DNA of 64,000 nucleotides from Anthoceros angustus (taxonomy: Eukaryota; Plantae; Anthocerotophyta), in contig VJWM01000117.1 of the NCBI GenBank assembly GCA_010909165.1, positions 682,001 to 746,000 of the forward strand, in the 5' to 3' direction. The position numbers were made by a program, and so were the translations under genes. Below, one piece after another: positions 41,561 through 56,352 of this stretch. Under the pieces are notes generated by a model. It did not search any database. It saw only the letters and a program-made list of their open reading frames with translations, and was not told the DNA's origin. Positions within the stretch are counted from its first letter, which is position 1. Every line of letters starts with the position of its first letter.

Positions 41561-41757
41561 TTCGCCCTTTAATTTTAAGGCGCTTTACAATAATTCGATA
41601 AAATTACGGACGTGTGATTTCTTTTCCTGGTTTTCTGCGACATTTACGAGCACACCCGCTAGCCTACATACCCCCACAAGGCTTCTTACTGATAGGGCTT
41701 CTGCTTCCTCTGCATACCGCTGGCGCCGCTGCTTCCGCCGGCTTGCGTCTCGTCGCC

Positions 41758-42573
41758 ATGGGTATCGACTTGGTCGCCGGTGGGCGCAACAAGAAGACGA
41801 AGCGCACAGCTCCGAAGAGTGACAATCCGTATCTCAAGCTTCTCGTGAAGGTGAGCATGGGGTGTTAGGGTTTCAGGCGTTCTCTCGATACTTCGACGGT
41901 GATGGCTGAGTCCAATTTTCGGGGGATCTGCTGCTGCAGCTGTACAGGTTTTTGGTGAGGCGGACTGAAAGTCCCTTCAACAAAGTCATTCTGAAGCGTT
42001 TGTTTATGAGTCGAACGAACAGGCCTCCGATTTCTCTTTCTCGACTTGTGAGGTACACCAAGGGCAAGGTTAGGGCACTTTTCAGAACCTCCAATCTCTG
42101 GCTATGGATGTCTGTGAGTAAGGAGTAACGGAAGCTTTTGTGGAGTTCAGGAGGATAAGATCGCCGTGGTAGTCGGGACTGTGACGGACGATATCAGATT
42201 GTATGAGCTGCCTGCTCTGCGGGTTGCTGCCCTGCGCTTCACTGAAACAGCCCGAGCACGTATCCTGAAGGCTGGTGGCGAGGTGTTAACTTTCGATCAG
42301 CTCGCGTTGAAGGCTCCAACAGGCTCCAACACTGTAAGTCCATCATGGGAACCTAGTAAATCTTTTGAACTTGCTGGTATGCAACTGACTCATTGAATGC
42401 CCATATTGGCCCAGCTTTTGTTGAGGGGACCTAAGAATGCACGCGAAGCAGTGAAGCACTTTGGAAGGGCACCTGGCGTACCTCACAGCCACACAAAGCC
42501 CTATGTCAGGTCCAAGGGCAGGAAGTTTGAGAAGGCTCGTGGACGCCGTAACAGCAGAGGCTTCAAGGTGTAG
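41758..42573 (+). CDS. RPL18: 60S ribosomal protein L18 (eL18), 187 aa, 4 exons
   Basis: Exons 41758-41850, 41940-42068, 42151-42333, 42415-42573, all GT-AG. Translation [46 protein letters not shown]. Confidence 0.97.
41866..41873 (-). promoter_or_regulatory. Telo-box (AAACCCTA) in RPL18 intron 1
   Basis: TAGGGTTT on the + strand. Telo-boxes are typical of plant ribosomal-protein gene 5' regions; another lies upstream of calmodulin (63142-63149). Confidence 0.4.
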
Positions 42574-44373: not shown

Positions 44374-47232
44374 ATGGGTCAAAGCTCGCCCGAGACGCCG
44401 GCTGGTGCTTTGGATTCGACTGTTAAGCTCCTGTACTGTGCCAGTCAGGGGGACAAAGAGGGTCTGAAGGGCGTTTTAGCGGACGGAGCTTCTGTTAACG
44501 CAGCAGACTATGACGGCAGAACAGCATTGCATCTTGCTGCTTGTGTGGGGAATGTACCTGTGGTTGAATTGTTACTGCAACATAAGGCGTTTATCAACCC
44601 AATTGATCGGTGGGGCCGGACGGTGAGATGCGGTTGTGGATGTGATCCTCTGTCGGTTTGCCCTGCCAAGACGTTATTTTGTCGCTGTCAGTGAATCGAT
44701 TGAACTTGGAATATAATATAATATGTGATATAATCAACTCAAAGAAATTCTTCATGCTGCAGCCTCTAGAAGATGCACAGCGATACGGCTTCACGGAAGT
44801 TTGCAAGCTGTTGGAAGACAATGGAGGATCTGTTTGTTCTTCTGCTTTCTCTCCTTGCTGAAATTTTTACAATTTTTTACAGTTTTCAAGTGCTATATAT
44901 CTGAAATTGGCAGTATCTCATGTTAGACTTCGCATGATGTTAAGAAAGAGTAATTAGAAAAGCTCTTCTTGTCTGACAGGTCAACTCTACGGGTTACGAG
45001 CCTCCAGGTGCTACGGGAGCTGAATGGGAAATTGACTATTCTGAACTTGATTTCTCAAACAGTCGCTGCATTGGCAAGGTGAAAAGGACTTCGACACTGT
45101 ACTGACATCTTGTCTGAGGTTATCGTAGCCACCAGTCAGAGGGTAGATAGGACATAAGTATCAATATCGGGGAAAAAAAGCTCACACCGTAAATTGGAGT
45201 TCTGAAATGGTGAAGTTGTCTTACCTTCTTACAAAAGACTGCGGTGTGACCATCAATAGGGTGCTTTTGGAGAAATACATCTGGTTAACTGGCGAGGTAC
45301 TAGAGTGGCGGCGAAGACTATTTTGAGCTCGTTGAATTCAGATCCTAAAGTCCGGTGATTTTCCCATTTGTTGTGCCCACAAGCTCGTGATATGCATTTT
45401 AGATTTGAGGCTCAGAAGAAGGTTATGCTTCTTGGAAGTCGTCCATTGCTGGGTATGCGATATGCGTTTGATCTGACACATTTGCTGCTTACCTGCTGTT
45501 CATCCTACCCTTGTTCATGTAGTGCAGGAAAGAATTTATTGAGGAGCTGGGTCTGCTCCAAAAACTTCGACACCCAAATATTGTTCAGTTTTTGGGTGCT
45601 GTGACTAAGAGCGATCCGCTTGTCATTGTGACCGAGTACTTGCCCAGGGTTGTGTGACGATTCTCCCCTTGTTTTGTTCTATAGGTTTGTGTTTAAACGC
45701 TCATGTTTGCCAATAATCTTTCTTACTCTGAATTAGCAGGGTGATCTCCATAGGATTCTGCAAAAGGAGGGTCGGTTGAGCGCAGCCCAAGCCATCCGTT
45801 TTGCCCTTGATATTGCCCGGTAGACTCATGTGCTTCTCAGGTTAATTTCAGAGGGAAGGACGTCTTGGGTTTATTGCGTCACAGTAACGTTGAGTGCAAA
45901 AGCTGTGCAAAGCTTTCATTGACCTCCCTTCTTTCGGTTTTGCAGGGGCATGAATTATCTTCATGAACATAAGCCCAAGCCAGTATTGCATCGTGATTTG
46001 AAGCCCAGGTATGCCCCTACACACTCAGTAACTGTCATGATGTAGGCTTTGGTAGCCCAGCTCATGCAGTTCTTGTCGCTAGTGACTATGTTAACGTTGA
46101 CTTACTTTGTGAACTATATAAGTGAATTTGATTGTGTTTTGTTCTTGGAACCAGAAATTTGCTACAGGACGAAGCAGGTCATCTTAAGGTCGCAGATTTT
46201 GGGTTGGGGAAACTGGTGGAGGCTAAATCAAATGTTCATGAAGTGTATAGAATGACTGGAGAGACTGGATCATGTGCGTTTCTTGTTGTCCGATTCCTTT
46301 TTGTGTATAATGTCATTGGTTGTGTGCCACTTCTACTGATGTAAAATTCTCAACGCGGACAGCTTGGCTGTGAGGGGATACTCTGCTTGTTTGCTGGTCT
46401 ACAGGGTCTGTGACTCCGTCAGTAGGTTGTTAGCATTTGGACATGTTTTTTATTATAATTGGTCCATATGGTGAGGCCTAAGGCTGATTATGTGTGGCTT
46501 GAGTTCCTCCTAGTGTGCATGTGATGTCAAGTACTTTCTTGACTGAAGATATGGTCGGCTCACGTGATTATCAGTGCGCTGGTTCATGAGTTCAGAAAAG
46601 TGACACCACATCTGGACTGTAAAACGAATTAGCACTGATGACATCTGCGGACTGGCAGATCGATATATGGCTCCGGAGGTTTTCAAGCATGAGGAATATG
46701 ACAAAAGCGTTGATGTGTTTTCATTTGCAATCATTGTGCACGAGGTATTGCTCAAAGTTCCATTGTGAGTTTCAGGGCTTACCCTGGTCTATTCGCTGAG
46801 AAATTGAAGGTGTGTTTTATCTTGGCAGATGTTCGAGGGGACTTCATCTTATTCTCCTCAGTTATCCCATCAATTAGCGAGGGCCAGGGCGCTTGACAAC
46901 GTGAGGCCAGCTTTCACAGTTAACAACTATCCAGAGAAGATGAAAGAGTGAGATCTTCCTTCTCTCATCTTAGGGTGCTGGTTACACAAGAACAGTCTGT
47001 CATGTATGGGGAACGTGATTTCTTTTCCTGGTCCGAACCTTTTAACATGTAACCATAACTTTCTGCTTCTTTTTTGTTTGAACCCAAACCATGTCGCAGG
47101 CTTTTGCAGGAGTGCTGGCATCAAGATCCTAAGCAGCGGCCTACGTTTTTGGATATAATTTTGTCCATGGAAGAGATTGAGAAGTCATTGAATAGCTTCA
47201 GTCTCCAAAGGTGTACGTGTCTTGTTGTGTAG
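44374..47232 (+). CDS. Ankyrin-repeat Raf-like Ser/Thr kinase (VIK/ILK-like group), 11 exons
   Basis: Exons 44374-44622, 44763-44831, 44980-45078, 45260-45354, 45528-45648, 45740-45819, 45946-46008, 46155-46273, 46659-46744, 46829-46947, 47100-47232 splice in frame with GT-AG. Ankyrin DYDGRTALHLAA; kinase motifs GKGAFG, VAAK, HRDLKPRN, DFG, TGSYRYMAPE. Confidence 0.93.
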
Positions 47233-48438
47233 ATGGTAATGCAGGTATAGTGGGGTTCTGGTTCCAAAAGTTTGCCGCACTTGTGTCATGACAAGGGTGG
47301 ACCAGACCCAGCAGTTTAGCGAAACCTTCTTTTAGGATTTAACACACGCACGTTTCTACTCAGTTTGCGTCCTAGTTTTTGGGCCTGTAGCAGTTCAGCT
47401 GGAGGATGTAAATAGTGGTAGGGAGGTAGTGGAGGGGTTAGGGAGACCATCCAGCGCAGGTTCGGAATGTCGCTTGAGGGTCGTTAATCAGTGCGGGTAG
47501 GTTGGTTCATCGGATTCTGCATAAACTGGCTCACATATTTGGATTGGCTCGCATAGTTACGAATGTGGATACCTGTATGGCAGTGATCCTCATGACATCA
47601 CAGCCTCAGTGCTCGCAAACAGCCAAAGCACGACTTGGCGACTTTCGTCGCAATCACTCCTATTACCCCAAACACAGGGATGCTGTGTGCTGCCCGCTGA
47701 TGCCAGAGGAAAGAGACTTCATAGTACTTACAGCACAGAGAACGGTTTCCTTAGTATCCCTATGATACAACTGGAATGGAAAGTGAACAATGCTTGACAT
47801 CGTCTGATATTTTGCTTAGAATTGAAGAAAAAGGTTGAGGATTTATCCTTCCCCGTTTAAGGTTAAAGCTGGTGTCCAGATGAAGAAGGGACAATGTGGA
47901 GGTTTAGGGTGGTGGTCCCACGCCGCAACCATCTCGCGGCATTTGCCGAGCATGGCAGCCTAGGCGTTGTCGGCGAGGGGGAGAGATGGCGCAGCCTGGG
48001 TTCCTGTTCACGCCTCTGTGCTTCGCTGCAGCTCAACCATGCACTCCGAACAGTGATGCAGCTGGAGTGATGGTGGAAGAGGGAGATCCTGAGCTCAACA
48101 GAAATATGGACCTAACAAGAAAGCGCGCATTGGTAACTCCCCGCTGCTCCGCGCGCATCGGTAACATGGATGTCGCTGGTGTGAGACCTACAGACTGTGA
48201 GAGCTTCTTTCAGTTGTGAGCATATAGAAATTCAGATCGTAAGATTGTGTGTGCCAAGAGTGCAGATAGGTAGGTAGTGTGTGTCAAGAGTGAAGATCGG
48301 CAAGTAGTGTGTGGCAAGAGTGAATCAGATTGCAAGCTGGTTCAAAGCAATGTCCTGAGATTTCCCCTCGTCTTCATAGAATTGGAGGAAGATTCTGGAA
48401 GATTGAATACTTCGGCAGTCTAGCTTTCTCCTAGCTTG

Positions 48439-49230
48439 CTAGGACCAGCCATCGGGATCAGCGTCTTCGAAAGTAGAGCCCGCACCGATCTGATCATACC
48501 ACACCTCGCGCGAGCCCTGGGACCCGACCATGTGGCCGCTGTCGTGCCAGCCATTGGCGTAGAGGCCGGTGCGGAACTGGAAAGGGCGGCCATCATCTTG
48601 AACCGTGGTGGCCAGGTTGTAGTTCTCCGTCACCAATTTGCCATCGAACCAGAGCTTGAAGAAGCCCGTGTTGTCGCTCTTCCAGGAGGCTTGAATCACG
48701 ATCTTGTGCCACTTCCCGGCCGAGACAGTGGCCAGATTAGGGAAGTCGGTGACGGAGGCCTCGCACGGCGGGCCGGACTTGACGCGGGAGTAGAGCTGGT
48801 CGCCGCGCAACCACACCATGGTGCTCGGGATGTATTTGCTGCACGGGTAATCGTTGAAGTTGGCGATGAATTGCGCGATGTTGTAGGACTGATCGTCGAA
48901 CTCCCACGCCTCCTGCAAATGGAACGCGAATCCGTAGAACCCCGTCTGCCCGCGCTCGTACACGTTGAACTTCGCCGCCTCGGAGTGGTAGCGGCCGGTG
49001 TAGGACGGGTCGTAGATCTGCGTGCATTTGATGGAAGTGGAGCCCTTGTACACCACGTTGGTTCTTTCCGTCACCGTCCCCTCATGCTCTTGGATGATGT
49101 TGTCCCACCCGGACAGAGTGCCCGTGTTGTGGAACAAAACCTTGGCCTGGATCGAAGTCAGGCCCCGGCATATCATTACTGCCATTGCCAGCAGCTGCAG
49201 CACTTCCAGCTTGAGCACGCTCTCCATCAT
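48439..49230 (-). CDS. Secreted polysaccharide lyase family 20-like protein (endo-beta-1,4-glucuronan lyase-like), 263 aa
   Basis: Signal-peptide-like N-terminus (MMESVLKLEVLQLLAMAVMICRGLTSIQA). Motifs YTGRYHSE, FYGFAF, SYNIAQFIAN, PSTMVW, WKSDNTGFFKLWFDG, FQFRTGLYANGWHD and EVWYD match what I recall of fungal PL20 enzymes. Intronless. Confidence 0.85.
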   Translation of the reverse strand: MMESVLKLEVLQLLAMAVMICRGLTSIQAKVLFHNTGTLSGWDNIIQEHEGTVTERTNVVYKGSTSIKCTQIYDPSYTGRYHSEAAKFNVYERGQTGFYGFAFHLQEAWEFDDQSYNIAQFIANFNDYPCSKYIPSTMVWLRGDQLYSRVKSGPPCEASVTDFPNLATVSAGKWHKIVIQASWKSDNTGFFKLWFDGKLVTENYNLATTVQDDGRPFQFRTGLYANGWHDSGHMVGSQGSREVWYDQIGAGSTFEDADPDGWS

Positions 49231-49495: not shown

Positions 49496-49570
49496 TCAAG
49501 TGACCTCTTTTCCTTGTCACACACGGACGTTTTCACCACTTTTATAAAACAAGGAAAAGAGGTCACTTGA
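49496..49570. repeat. Perfect 22-bp inverted repeat with a 31-nt loop
   Basis: tcaagtgacctcttttccttgt (49496-49517) / acaaggaaaagaggtcacttga (49549-49570). Confidence 0.85.
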
Positions 49571-49779
49571 AACAACATGAAAATTGACGTTAAGGTAGAC
49601 TTGTATGGTTCATGTGGTCTCTCCTATGCAATTGGGACATGTTTGATTATAATTATCTAGCCAACGCATAATGCATGTCATGTGAAAATGGTGAAGATAC
49701 ACATTCATTTTGGTGATCTCTTTTTTGTTTTTTCAAGAGAATTCGAAGACTTTATATAGATATTTCGAAGTATAATCGA

Positions 49780-50340
49780 AGTCCCACACGGGAGTTTTTT
49801 TCATATGAAGTAACCCCGTAAGACACTAACACTTGGTGGCCAAGTCCCACACGGGAGTTTTTTTCATATGAAGTAACCCTGTAAGACACTAACACTTGGT
49901 GGCCAAGTCCCACACGGGAGTTTTTTTCATATGAAGTAACCCTGTAAGACACTAACAGTTGGTGGCCCCGCATACTACGGAGACGAGGGCACCCTTTATA
50001 AGCGGTGGCCCCACAAGGCCATGGAAATGGAGAATGAGTGGCACCCCATTCGAGCATTCATACATCCCAAGGATGCTTGACTGCGGAGTCCTTCATGCAC
50101 TAATCTATCCAAAGGACGATTGATTGGAGTTTCAAAGAACCCATGTTTGGATGTCACTCCTGAGGTAGCTTGGAGGTGATTGATTGTGGAGTTGCAAAGA
50201 ACCCATGTTTGGATGTCACTCCTGAGACAGCTTGGTGACGATTGATTGTGGAGTTGCAAAGAACCCATGTTTGGATGTCACTCCTGAGACAGCTTGGTGA
50301 CGATTGATTGTGGAGTTGCAAAGAACCCATGTTTGGATGT
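49780..50340. repeat. Two minisatellites: 63 bp x3 (49780-49965) and 62 bp x~4 (50125-50340)
   Basis: Periods read from tcatatgaag at 49801/49864/49927 and cctgagacag at 50221/50283. Confidence 0.85.
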
Positions 50341-51189
50341 CCCTGCTGAGGCAGCTTGGTTCCGTCTTCAGGAAAAAGAGCACACATTCATTTTGGTGAC
50401 CTCTTCATTTTTTTCAATTACATTAAGACAGATGCTTCAAATAATAGAATCATCATGGCCTTAGCCATCATATATTGTTGTTATATTTATTTGTCCAATA
50501 AACTTATCACTTTTGATGTTATCACACATGCCCATGACATCATATTTAGTTGTCATGGAATTGAAGAGAACATTACAGTTGTAGCGTTGGTTTGTGTACC
50601 TAGTAAAATTGCCATGTGGTTGTATGATAGTTGTGTAGTGGGTGCGTAGTGTGTGCGTAGTGTACTTATCCTTATAAGCCCTTACTTATATTACCTTGTC
50701 AACCTATATTTAAGAGGTTGTAGGTAAGGAGTGATAAGGGGTACGTAGGTTATAGGTAAGATTGAAACCCTCTGACATGCTAACATTTATCAGCGCTGAT
50801 CACACTAATCGGGAGGCGGAACATATCACATCTATCTTCAATTCGAACAGCCGCGCATGCTCCTTAATACCTATCCACTTTCTAGAAAAGATCAGCGACA
50901 CTAATTTTCTTTTAATCGAAATTGAGCACCGTTATTTGTGCTCAACACCCCATTTGAGCGTTTCGCAATCGGTTGGCTTCTCTTGAACAGATGGTCCAGG
51001 CAGGTCTCTCAATCAGTCAGATTGTATGCGCGGATGCATATCGTGGAGGAAAGGGCTAGTGAAATCCTTGGTAGGAGAAGCTCAATTTATTTTGTTGTTG
51101 CACCTCAACCTCTTGGGGGTTAATGATCCCCCTGCTCCTTCTTATCCCGGTGGCAACACAATATCGGAAGTTGTTTCTGAGACAGCGGA

Positions 51190-52660: not shown

Positions 52661-52779
52661 GAGGAGTTAATTTTGTGTTTCTGAAGTCACCTACAAGGAC
52701 TGCACCTGGGATGTGCAAGCAAGCCTTGTTTTGTTGTACGTGATACGTGATGTTTCCACCGACTTATTTCTTGGCGGAT

Positions 52780-54309
52780 GCGGTACGCCAAGAAAACCTC
52801 GGATGGTGGCGGTGCATGCCCTCATCGTCTTAAGTGGACTCAGCCCTACTCCTTCTTGGGGAATCGCCTGATCTGCTTCTATGTTTGCTGTGGACGTTTG
52901 GTGGAAGCAACAAGAGTTTTCACACAGTTGCCAGGTTCAGCGAGGGATAACTTCGAGTGGGCTGCTATCATCTCCGCACATGGCAATCACGGCTGGCCTC
53001 AGCAGGCTGTCCAGTTCTATGATCAAATGCATAGATTATCGAATGGAAGACCTGACTATACTGTGTTTGTGGCTGCACTCAAGGCATGATTGTCGATGCC
53101 ACGGCCTTGTCAATGGCGAGCTAATTCGAATTCATGCCCACGTAAAGAGAACATGGGTGTGCATCACGGGCTTTGGGTTACCTGGCGGTCAACATGTATG
53201 CCAAGTGTGGGAGGCTGCAGAATGCGCTCACAGTATTTGCCAGGTTGCCTACAAGAGATGCAGTAACATGGAATGCCATGATCGCAGGCTACATCCAGCA
53301 CGGATGCATCCTCAAGGCGTGTTCCAGCATGGCAGCAAAGGAGCAGGGCCAGCTGATTATCAAAAGCGGCCTGGAGCTAGATGAGTTTGTTGGAAGCAGC
53401 CTTATTGACATGTATGCCAAATGTGGGAACCTGGAAGCCGCACGTCACGTATTCGACGGCTTAGCCACCAGGGGCCTGGTCACCTGGACGGCATTGATGG
53501 CTGGAGTGCCATGATTGTTGGCTATGCTCATCATGATGGAGGCCTGGAGGTACCGGAGCTTTTTAGGCAAATTTAAATGCAACAGGAGGGCATTGAGACA
53601 GACAATATTATGCTCCTTTAACGTTCTCAGAGCGTGTTCAGGAGTGGCAGCGTTGGACCTAGGCAAACTCATTCATGCTCACATCAGGGAAGTTGGTTCA
53701 TGTCAAATGTGGTAGTCTAGATGAAGCTCGGGCTTTCTTTGACAGGTGTCGGCAAGAGATATGGTAACATGGACTTCCTTGATTGCTGGATATGCCAATG
53801 AGGGCAATGGTCAAGAGGCCCTGAGGCTCTATCAGGAGATCAAACAAATGGGACTGCAGCCGAACGAGGTGACCCTTGTCAGCCTTCTCAAGGCATGTTC
53901 CACCATGACAGCTCTCCATCAGGGTACGCTGGTGCACGCCAGAATCATCCTGGATGGTTTTTAGCTCGTAAATGATCTCGTGTCCTGGTATGGAGCATTA
54001 AGACAGAAGTGTTTTAAAGCTATTTTGGAGATGGATCCAGGAAATGCTACACCCCACGTGCTCATTGGAGATGTGTATGCTGTATCTGGAAGGTGGGAAG
54101 ATAGAGCGGCCATCCGAAAGCAGATGCAGGGCCTTTGTGCCAAGAAGGAGCCTGGTCGCACCTGGATGGAGTTGGATAGCAAGGTGCAAATATTCGGGGT
54201 CGGGGTAGAGGAAAGATCACATCCTGGCAGAAGACAATTAAGTGACAAGCTGAAAATGCTTACCGAGACCATCACAAACAACTTTCACAGACTTGGCCCC
54301 AGAGAGTGA
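52780..54309 (+). pseudogene. Decayed PLS-PPR-E/E+ gene of PG-box type
   Basis: Many frameshifted PPR pieces (MYAKCGRLQNA.., SSLIDMYAKCGNLEAAR.., VTWTSLIAGYANEG) ending in GRWEDRAAIRKQM..KKEPGRTWME. Confidence 0.8.
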
Positions 54310-55380: not shown

Positions 55381-56352
55381 TTATCGTGGAGTTCTTGAGG
55401 TTGTTATGGAGTTGGAGCTGGTTCTTGTTGTGGAGCTGGAGCTGGAGCTGGTTTCTGTTGTGGAGCTGGAGCCGGAGCTGGAGCTGTTGCTGGAGCTGGG
55501 GCGCCAGAAAAAAGTGGAAACATGACGCATGTCAGAATCGGTACACCATACTCTGGCCTTATTCCTCGACAAATCTCTTCCCTCCCATTTGCACCAACCG
55601 AACAACTTGGTTTCTTCGAGCAAGGGAGTGGTCCGCAGCATTAGATCAACATATGGCACGAGCCCAACTTCGTGGCAAACAACGTGCAGCCTGACGATGG
55701 ATGTGTTGAGCTTCCCATTCTCGCCCGGTTCACGCAATCCTGTTTGAAGCAGCGTACCCAGAGCTTGCACATCGTCATTCCCAGCCTTCACCTTGCAGAG
55801 CGTGGTGTTGCTGGCCAGGGCGTGTCCGATCATTGTCGCCCCTTTCACGTCCAACCCTATGTGCATTATTCGCAATTTGTGGAGGGAGGGGCAGACTCCA
55901 TTCTGGAGCAATCCCACCAGCTGTGACGCGCCTCCTCCTGCATCACCGCCGCCCAAACCCTCATTATTCGACAGCTCCAGGTAGCGGAGCGCGGAGTGGG
56001 GGTTGGCCTGCAGCCCGCGCACCAGCTGGGCCAACCCGCCCGCTCGCATCCAAGTGGAGAGCAAATTCAGTTTGCAGATTTTCCGGCTTCGACGCAGGAG
56101 GCCGCCTAGAGCTGCACCTGCAGCCTCACTACTCATGTCCATAAATGCCAAATCCAGGTCTTGCAGTGAGGCAGAGATGTTGGATGCGGATGCCAGCCCT
56201 CCCAACACAGCCTGCCACTCTTCCGCTCCGCCGTCCTCGCCTCTCTTGATGTCCCGCCCATCCAGCTGTCTGGTCTTGAGGGCACAAAGAAGGAGCGGGC
56301 TTGAATCCAACGACCCCTTGCCAGCGCTTGCCATGCCTCCACATAGCGACAA
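55381..56352 (-). CDS. RNI-like leucine-rich-repeat protein with a Ser-rich tail (true start uncertain; possibly truncated)
   Basis: LQDLDLAF..G AALGGLL, ICKLNLLST..GGLAQLVRGLQAN..LRYLELSNN, LHKLRIMHIGLDVKGATMIGHALASNTTL. GC-rich intronless ORF. Confidence 0.5.
   Translation of the reverse strand: MSLCGGMASAGKGSLDSSPLLLCALKTRQLDGRDIKRGEDGGAEEWQAVLGGLASASNISASLQDLDLAFMDMSSEAAGAALGGLLRRSRKICKLNLLSTWMRAGGLAQLVRGLQANPHSALRYLELSNNEGLGGGDAGGGASQLVGLLQNGVCPSLHKLRIMHIGLDVKGATMIGHALASNTTLCKVKAGNDDVQALGTLLQTGLREPGENGKLNTSIVRLHVVCHEVGLVPYVDLMLRTTPLLEETKLFGWCKWEGRDLSRNKARVWCTDSDMRHVSTFFWRPSSSNSSSSGSSSTTETSSSSSSTTRTSSNSITTSRTPR

Follow-up and report, generated by a model that had tools for sequence, protein, structure and literature searches.

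Two questions are raised by the open reading frame on the minus strand of this hornwort DNA (Anthoceros angustus; the whole stretch analysed, 64,000 nt, is referred to here as the window): does it encode a glucuronan lyase of polysaccharide lyase family 20 (PL20), and, if so, how did a gene of a family defined on a fungal enzyme come to lie in a plant chromosome? An earlier note on the same letters had proposed a horizontally acquired, fungal-like gene. We examined the ORF, its predicted product, its surroundings and its relatives in turn.

The ORF list and translation give a complete coding sequence at 48439..49230 (minus strand), with an ATG at 49230, 263 codons and a stop at 48439–48441. 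It contains no internal stops, introns or frame breaks and is single-copy in the window. Pfam PF14099 (Polysacc_lyase) matched the translation with an E value of 2.2e-65 and 220.9 bits (gathering score 29.9 bits) over profile positions 2–209 of 210, and phmmer aligned residues 33–260 to residues 4–236 of 2ZZJ_A, glucuronan lyase A of Trichoderma reesei (TrGL; E value 3.2e-88), the sole good match among solved structures. No NCBIfam model matched the protein. TrGL (BAG80639, PDB 2ZZJ, EC 4.2.2.14) is the founding member of PL20 and shows full-length homology to the hornwort protein at approximately 56–60 % identity. CAZy families are defined by sequence, with significant full-length similarity to TrGL marking PL20, and the hornwort protein displays such similarity; judged from its sequence, the ORF is by family a putative PL20 endo-β-1,4-glucuronan lyase. 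The accessible part of a 2023 survey of the family (PMC10483417) tallies 54 CAZy entries (22 bacterial and 32 eukaryotic), names TrGL as the only characterised enzyme, makes no mention of plants and reports a mean pairwise identity of 55 % for 'canonical group A', a range within which the hornwort protein falls.

The first ~29 codons (49144..49230, minus strand) encode a signal-peptide-like hydrophobic leader preceding the part that aligns to mature TrGL, the alignment to 2ZZJ beginning only at residue 33. The structural model likewise has a lone helix at residues 3–23 ahead of the jelly roll, and hydrophobic N-termini are common to all plant and bacterial homologues in the alignment. From this leader, we infer that the lyase is probably secreted.

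An AlphaFold2 model built from an 83-sequence alignment reached a pLDDT of 94.4, where an 11-sequence alignment gave only 61.5, and consists of an N-terminal helix followed by an all-β sandwich. Its top Foldseek match is 2ZZJ (E value 2e-32, TM 0.86/0.95 with 0.95 on the target, rmsd 1.2 Å, 56 % identity), and the runners-up, comprising PL7, PL13 and PL14 lyases together with lectin-like domains and generic jelly rolls, have TM scores of ~0.56 or less. The receptor-binding domains of clostridial neurotoxins were also returned (TM ~0.4–0.5, 11–15 % identity); we regard this as a generic lectin-like jelly-roll resemblance and uninformative.

Six residues form the active site of TrGL (Arg51, His53, Glu55, Gln91, Tyr200 and Asp206; PMC7601620). 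In the alignment to 2ZZJ, they correspond to R80, H82, E84, Q120, Y224 and D230 of the hornwort lyase, where 6/6 are kept, and conservation at these positions across 83 homologues is complete or no lower than 90 %. The first three lie in the run R80-Y81-H82-S83-E84 (codons at 48979..48993, minus strand; HMMER alignment); these three are invariant in the 11-sequence alignment, with E84 nearly invariant in the 83-sequence alignment. The codon for Q120 is at 48871..48873 and those for Y224–D230, part of a GLYANGWHD motif, are at 48541..48561 (both minus strand). Two invariant cysteines (C130 and C156) are also retained. In addition to the fold, the six residues and both cysteines, the two proteins have in common a similar size and an N-terminal leader.

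The lyase also shows departures from the family pattern. Of 77 positions with a conservation of 95 % or more across 147 homologues, it differs at only 4 (V56R, A66S, R104H and D124N), and in two of these cases, V56R and R104H, the residue replaced is invariant elsewhere in the alignment; TrGL has Arg75 where the lyase has His104. A near-invariant Asp-Asp following Cys130, situated at the rim of the cleft and including TrGL Asp104, is Ser-Lys in the lyase, the GGDD loop of TrGL being shortened here. The lyase looks intact as an enzyme, although R104H and the Ser-Lys replacement at the cleft rim mean that its activity or specificity may differ.

Genes of plant type lie on both sides of the ORF. 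An intron-split gene for 60S ribosomal protein L18 (RPL18) is represented by two tested exon pieces at 41614..42396 (plus strand) that match separate parts of profile PF17135 (E value 3e-28 at 42166–42396 and 4.8e-5 at 41614–41868). Closer to the lyase, and tail-to-tail with it, is an intron-split plant gene with ankyrin-repeat and protein-kinase exons at 44374..46344 (plus strand), for which the tested exon pieces returned Pfam matches to Ank (E value 3.5e-11 at 44374–44694) and Pkinase (E value 6.6e-4 at 46132–46344). On the other side, a broken PLS-type PPR editing-factor gene occupies 52778..54309 (plus strand), its PPR repeats (PF01535, E value 8e-15) and E motif (PF20431, E value 8e-13) lying on ORFs in differing frames within 52.8–54.3 kb. 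Minisatellites are found between the lyase and the PPR/E-motif pieces. The G+C content at third codon positions (GC3) of the lyase is 0.84, with 30-codon blocks at 0.80–0.93 and the last 23 codons at 0.61; the neighbouring exons and ORFs have values of 0.34–0.65, save for one short RPL18 exon at 0.77. On this evidence, the lyase sits within plant DNA and belongs to the plant's nuclear genome. Much of the earlier description thus stands: the intronless frame is intact, the PL20 assignment passed the profile check and is upheld by the structural homologue, the strongly G/C-ending codons are evident against the values nearby, and the plant kinase and PPR pseudogene flanks are recovered as Ank/Pkinase and PF01535/PF20431 matches.

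A word-indexed search of 5.8 billion proteins returned 338 matches, and a second, run with a profile of plant sequences, returned 595; the best 120 of each were examined. The top match is a protein of Oleiharenicola sp. Vm1 (WP_415910647; Opitutales, Verrucomicrobiota) at 71 % identity, followed by proteins from the fern Ceratopteris richardii and the moss Ceratodon purpureus (67 % each) and the liverwort Riccia fluitans (66 % and 60 %), and then by Myxococcota (60–64 %) and many Ascomycota (54–66 %). Named plant proteins number four, from three species, among the best 120 of 338 and 595; the plant profile brought no additional one into its best 120, and Physcomitrium, Marchantia, lycophyte, seed-plant and algal proteins are absent from the best 120 of either search. 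There is an apparent annotation gap in the hornwort, since no hornwort orthologue is among the matches listed in either search, and the exact protein, sought with each of four possible start codons, is absent from a collection of 15 billion proteins, which likewise yielded no evidence of a transcript.

The plant homologues reside on chromosome-scale sequences: Ceratopteris KAH7281604 on 142 Mb, Ceratodon KAG0558699 on 17 Mb and the two Riccia copies, KAL2628671 and KAL2611182, on 57 and 55 Mb. Eukaryotic genes (Med31, CRAL-TRIO) are located near the Riccia and Ceratodon homologues. With Ceratodon KAG0602835, these uncharacterised PF14099 proteins are 60–67 % identical to the hornwort lyase and resemble it in their high GC3, secretory-type N-termini and presence as single small genes on plant chromosomes. 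GC3 is 0.65–0.92 in the plant copies vs a total GC of 0.36–0.49 in their flanks, indicating that the high GC3 of the hornwort lyase is a property of the clade and no mark of recency. We looked for a gene order common to the hornwort, Ceratopteris, Ceratodon and Riccia loci and saw none.

The moss and liverwort homologues are, like the hornwort gene, intronless. The fern gene, in contrast, carries an 89-nt GT-AG phase-0 intron between Gln and Glu codons at about residue 47 of the hornwort lyase, and excising it in silico reproduces the deposited Ceratopteris protein. The sister sequence of the fern gene is carried by five low-coverage metagenome contigs, in which coding breaks at the same codon as the fern intron and ends after an AT-rich stretch closing in TTAG; their flanks are also AT-rich. 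These contigs look like fern-type DNA with the same intron.

The Oleiharenicola gene, for its part, is found on a 4.6-Mb chromosome of 72–73 % GC, has a GC3 of 0.96 and adjoins the gene for a large DUF4450 protein, an arrangement repeated in two further contigs. This gene is truly bacterial, unlike the plant-hosted lyase with which it shares a strongly supported clade.

Our main tree (64 rows, mature domain only, LG+C20+F+G4, unrooted; support given as ultrafast bootstrap/SH-aLRT), with which a quick 121-sequence tree agrees, unites the hornwort lyase, all plant and plant-like sequences and three Opitutales sequences in one clade (99/89). Two bacterial or unnamed clades, of which one includes the Myxococcota, fall with it on one side of a branch that sets the fungi apart (99/94). 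Within the clade of plants and Opitutales, the hornwort lyase groups with the fern pair (97/72) and the Opitutales are their neighbour (97/95), and the mosses and Riccia split at a near-zero-length node. Read as an unrooted topology, the plants divide into (moss, liverwort / hornwort, fern), as they do in the unrooted species tree. The terminal branch of the hornwort lyase, at 0.44, is the longest in the clade (others 0.10–0.32), making it the most diverged copy. As the protein is short and conserved, the resolution of these trees is limited, and an approximately unbiased (AU) test that kept the eight plant rows monophyletic with the Opitutales outside did not reject that arrangement (ΔlnL 6.1, p=0.37). 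PL20 is placed in hornwort, moss, liverwort and fern, four major lineages of non-seed plants, as one clade.

Synonymous divergence of the hornwort lyase from every homologue is high or saturated. NG86 estimates of dS between the hornwort lyase and its homologues run from 0.76 to above 2 or are undefined; across all pairs dS is at least 0.59 and mostly saturated, and the lowest values come from pairs sharing extreme GC3, which biases dS downwards. The dN/dS ratio, likewise from NG86 with its saturated dS (YN00 was saturated for almost all pairs), is 0.11–0.37 for the hornwort lyase and 0.08–0.37 overall where dS is defined.

How, then, did the gene reach the hornwort? Its foreign, microbial ancestry is supported by these sequence comparisons, and that part of the earlier proposal of horizontal transfer stands; a fungal donor and a restriction to the hornwort are not supported. 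The homologues in Ceratopteris, Ceratodon and Riccia show that the gene is no hornwort peculiarity. The earlier note had also held that best hits forming a vertically inherited streptophyte family would speak against transfer, and we did find copies in moss, liverwort and fern falling in one clade, so that this description fits in part. The best reading, and in our judgement the probable one, is a single old bacterium-to-plant transfer, retained patchily in non-seed plants. We infer the number and the date of the transfers as follows. The related copies in moss, liverwort and fern would place the event long ago; a soil bacterium akin to present Opitutales or Myxococcota would have been the donor, and one transfer would have reached an early land plant before bryophytes and ferns diverged. 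Vertical inheritance would have followed: ferns would have acquired the intron, the Riccia gene would have duplicated, and many lineages would have lost the gene, Marchantia, Physcomitrium and the seed plants among them. The Oleiharenicola lineage may represent the donor, a recipient or just kin of the donor.

The main rival to a single transfer is a series of independent, lineage-specific transfers from related, Opitutales-like soil bacteria into hornwort, fern, moss and liverwort, or, in its minimum form, separate gifts to hornwort/fern and to moss/liverwort. We give this a real though minor chance. The Opitutales are nested within the plant clade, a topology that fits two or more transfers (or transfer from plant to bacterium), and the very patchy distribution of plant copies among the best 120 of 338 or 595 matches tells against one event. 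The hornwort gene is moreover intronless, with a GC3 approaching that of Oleiharenicola, and sits on the longest branch of the clade, all of which could mean a separate and younger acquisition; bryophytes have also been reported, in the accessible part of PMC12513842, as continuous takers of foreign genes. Against this, one plant clade is not rejected by the AU test, the plant branching follows the unrooted species-tree order, and a GC3 of 0.65–0.92 common to all plant copies gives no sign of recency. The hornwort and Oleiharenicola proteins are just 71 % identical, and dS is at least 0.76 despite their common GC3 bias.

Under a single old transfer or several, the hornwort copy could by now be a decaying or silent relic, with its ORF open yet unexpressed or inactive. 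This we hold to be improbable. It would agree with the lack of an exact protein copy in a collection that includes assemblies of public sequencing runs, with the long terminal branch and with the replacement of two otherwise invariant positions and the cleft-rim Asp-Asp. It sits poorly, however, with 263 codons without a stop, with the retention of the six active-site residues and both invariant cysteines, with dN/dS of 0.11–0.37 vs every homologue and with a GC3 bias that is held through nearly the whole gene and is weakest in the last 23 codons.

Direct transfer from a fungus to the hornwort, for example from a symbiont or pathogen, appears very improbable. PL20 takes its definition from a fungal enzyme and is frequent in Ascomycota, and the fungal proteins among the best 120 of 338 matches are up to 66 % identical to the lyase; in the AU test, a tree forcing the lyase to the fungal side is disfavoured, being 21 lnL units worse, and is formally unrejected (p=0.082). 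The free tree nevertheless unites plants with Opitutales and sets this bacterial side against the fungi, and the best non-plant match is bacterial. The label 'fungal-like' was therefore right as to family and wrong as to nearest kin: TrGL is fungal, whereas the closest relatives of the plant-hosted lyase are plant and bacterial. Least credible of all is an assembly chimera, in which a bacterial or fungal fragment was misjoined to plant DNA. GC does change abruptly, from 0.40–0.50 in the surroundings to 0.61 within the gene, but the window holds zero N, and the lone ORF is bordered to either side by AT-richer, non-bacterial sequence that carries repeats, past which plant genes follow. Three further plants, in which the gene is arranged alike, are among the closest named relatives, and the maximum identity to a known bacterial protein is just 71 %.

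A single old transfer would add one more microbial carbohydrate enzyme to those that entered early land plants, a type of event that is well known (>1,800 families in streptophytes; 1,809 transferred families are catalogued in the accessible part of PMC12513842). A close parallel is the bacterial glucuronyl hydrolase family PF07470, which was transferred and occurs in each of the three bryophyte groups (hornworts, mosses and liverworts; Zhang et al. 2020, PMC7027989); as with the lyase, a microbial glycan-degrading enzyme has come to be present in bryophytes. The same study describes transferred genes in A. angustus as exceeding the host's own genes in GC and codon bias, with few or no introns and with plant flanks; setting aside part of the tables, its text and supplement name neither PL20 nor PF14099. 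Among the papers covered, none names either in plants, though the large catalogues of Ma 2022 and Dong 2025 may list it.

By homology to TrGL, the hornwort lyase would cut β-1,4-polyglucuronic acid endolytically via β-elimination in the jelly-roll cleft, with catalysis by Arg80, His82, Glu84, Gln120, Tyr224 and Asp230 and with products bearing 4,5-unsaturated uronate ends. Its natural substrate would then be the wall glucuronan of Mucoromycota or a bacterial glucuronan exopolysaccharide. Hornworts host Mucoromycotina and Glomeromycotina, and a role directed at the walls of these fungi is an attractive hypothesis. The roles put forward in the earlier note, on symbiont or pathogen walls or on the plant's own mucilage, are likewise possible ones. 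Mucoromycota walls have chitosan as their second hallmark polymer. More speculatively, and in our judgement improbably, the lyase may belong to a bacterial-derived hornwort toolkit against two signature polymers of Mucoromycota walls, policing or digesting fungal partners or zygomycete pathogens. PF07470 glucuronyl hydrolase might complete such a toolkit, only if it accepts the unsaturated products of the lyase. If true, PL20 in land plants would be an ancient innovation, bound up with the earliest plant–fungus symbioses and lost where the biology shifted.

The literature on TrGL bears on both candidate substrates: glucuronan is reported in Mucorales walls and as a bacterial exopolysaccharide, and TrGL has been considered as a potential degrader of fungal walls, as well as in relation to polysaccharide monooxygenases (PMC7601620). 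The question raised is whether hornworts, mosses, liverworts and ferns use a glucuronan lyase against, or together with, Mucoromycota, which have polyglucuronic acid in their walls, or against the glucuronan slime of bacteria.

Finally, a perfect 22-nt inverted repeat enclosing a 31-nt loop with a TATAAA-like motif (49496..49570, no strand assigned) is positioned 270–340 nt upstream of the lyase ATG and represents a possible promoter-region element of the gene.

The PL20 gene of the fern Ceratopteris richardii contains an 89-nt, phase-0 GT-AG intron (CM035441.1; L001, 10127–10215) that is absent from the moss, liverwort and hornwort copies, and is a gain in the fern gene. A sister sequence to this gene was present on five low-coverage contigs (L006–L010) from ENA metagenome assemblies (ERZ1034393/399/401 and ERZ27227294/296). 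On these contigs, the coding sequence is bordered by AT-rich DNA and stops at the codon where the fern gene has its intron; the ~490 nt upstream contained no first exon. The contigs probably represent fern-type plant DNA within metagenomes. A further homologue, P0020 (L004, 3–761; Logan SRR33208216), clusters with the two Ceratodon proteins (KAG0558699 and KAG0602835), and the organism sampled in SRR33208216 is probably a moss. On the same contig, 1.8 kb from P0020, is part of a gene that encodes an ALO (lactone oxidase) domain.

Among bacteria, the PL20 genes of Oleiharenicola sp. Vm1 (L011, 1683–6768) and of two related contigs (L013, 314–4661; L014, 4421–8768) each adjoin, in divergent orientation, a gene for a DUF4450 protein of 1136–1288 aa, and are followed by two unannotated genes of 307–356 aa (3/3 loci for both features). 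This arrangement may constitute a bacterial glucuronan-utilisation locus. The wall polymers of Mucoromycota include both glucuronan and chitosan.

Within the window, three minisatellites flank the hornwort lyase gene and give rise to spurious repeated ORFs: one directly beyond the stop codon (3×30 nt, 48233–48324) and two upstream (3×63 nt, 49779–49967; 4×62 nt, 50115–50360), the upstream pair with matches of 93–98 %. At 270–340 nt upstream of the lyase start codon is a perfect inverted repeat (49496–49570) with 22-nt arms and a 31-nt loop containing a TATAAA-like motif. This repeat may form a hairpin, belong to a promoter or be what is left of a small transposon.

Elsewhere in the window, a 323-aa ORF on the minus strand (55381–56352) returned no match in Pfam. 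Its GC content (0.55–0.59) exceeds that of its surroundings, and its product is leucine-rich-repeat-like in appearance, with a long Ser/Thr-rich tail.
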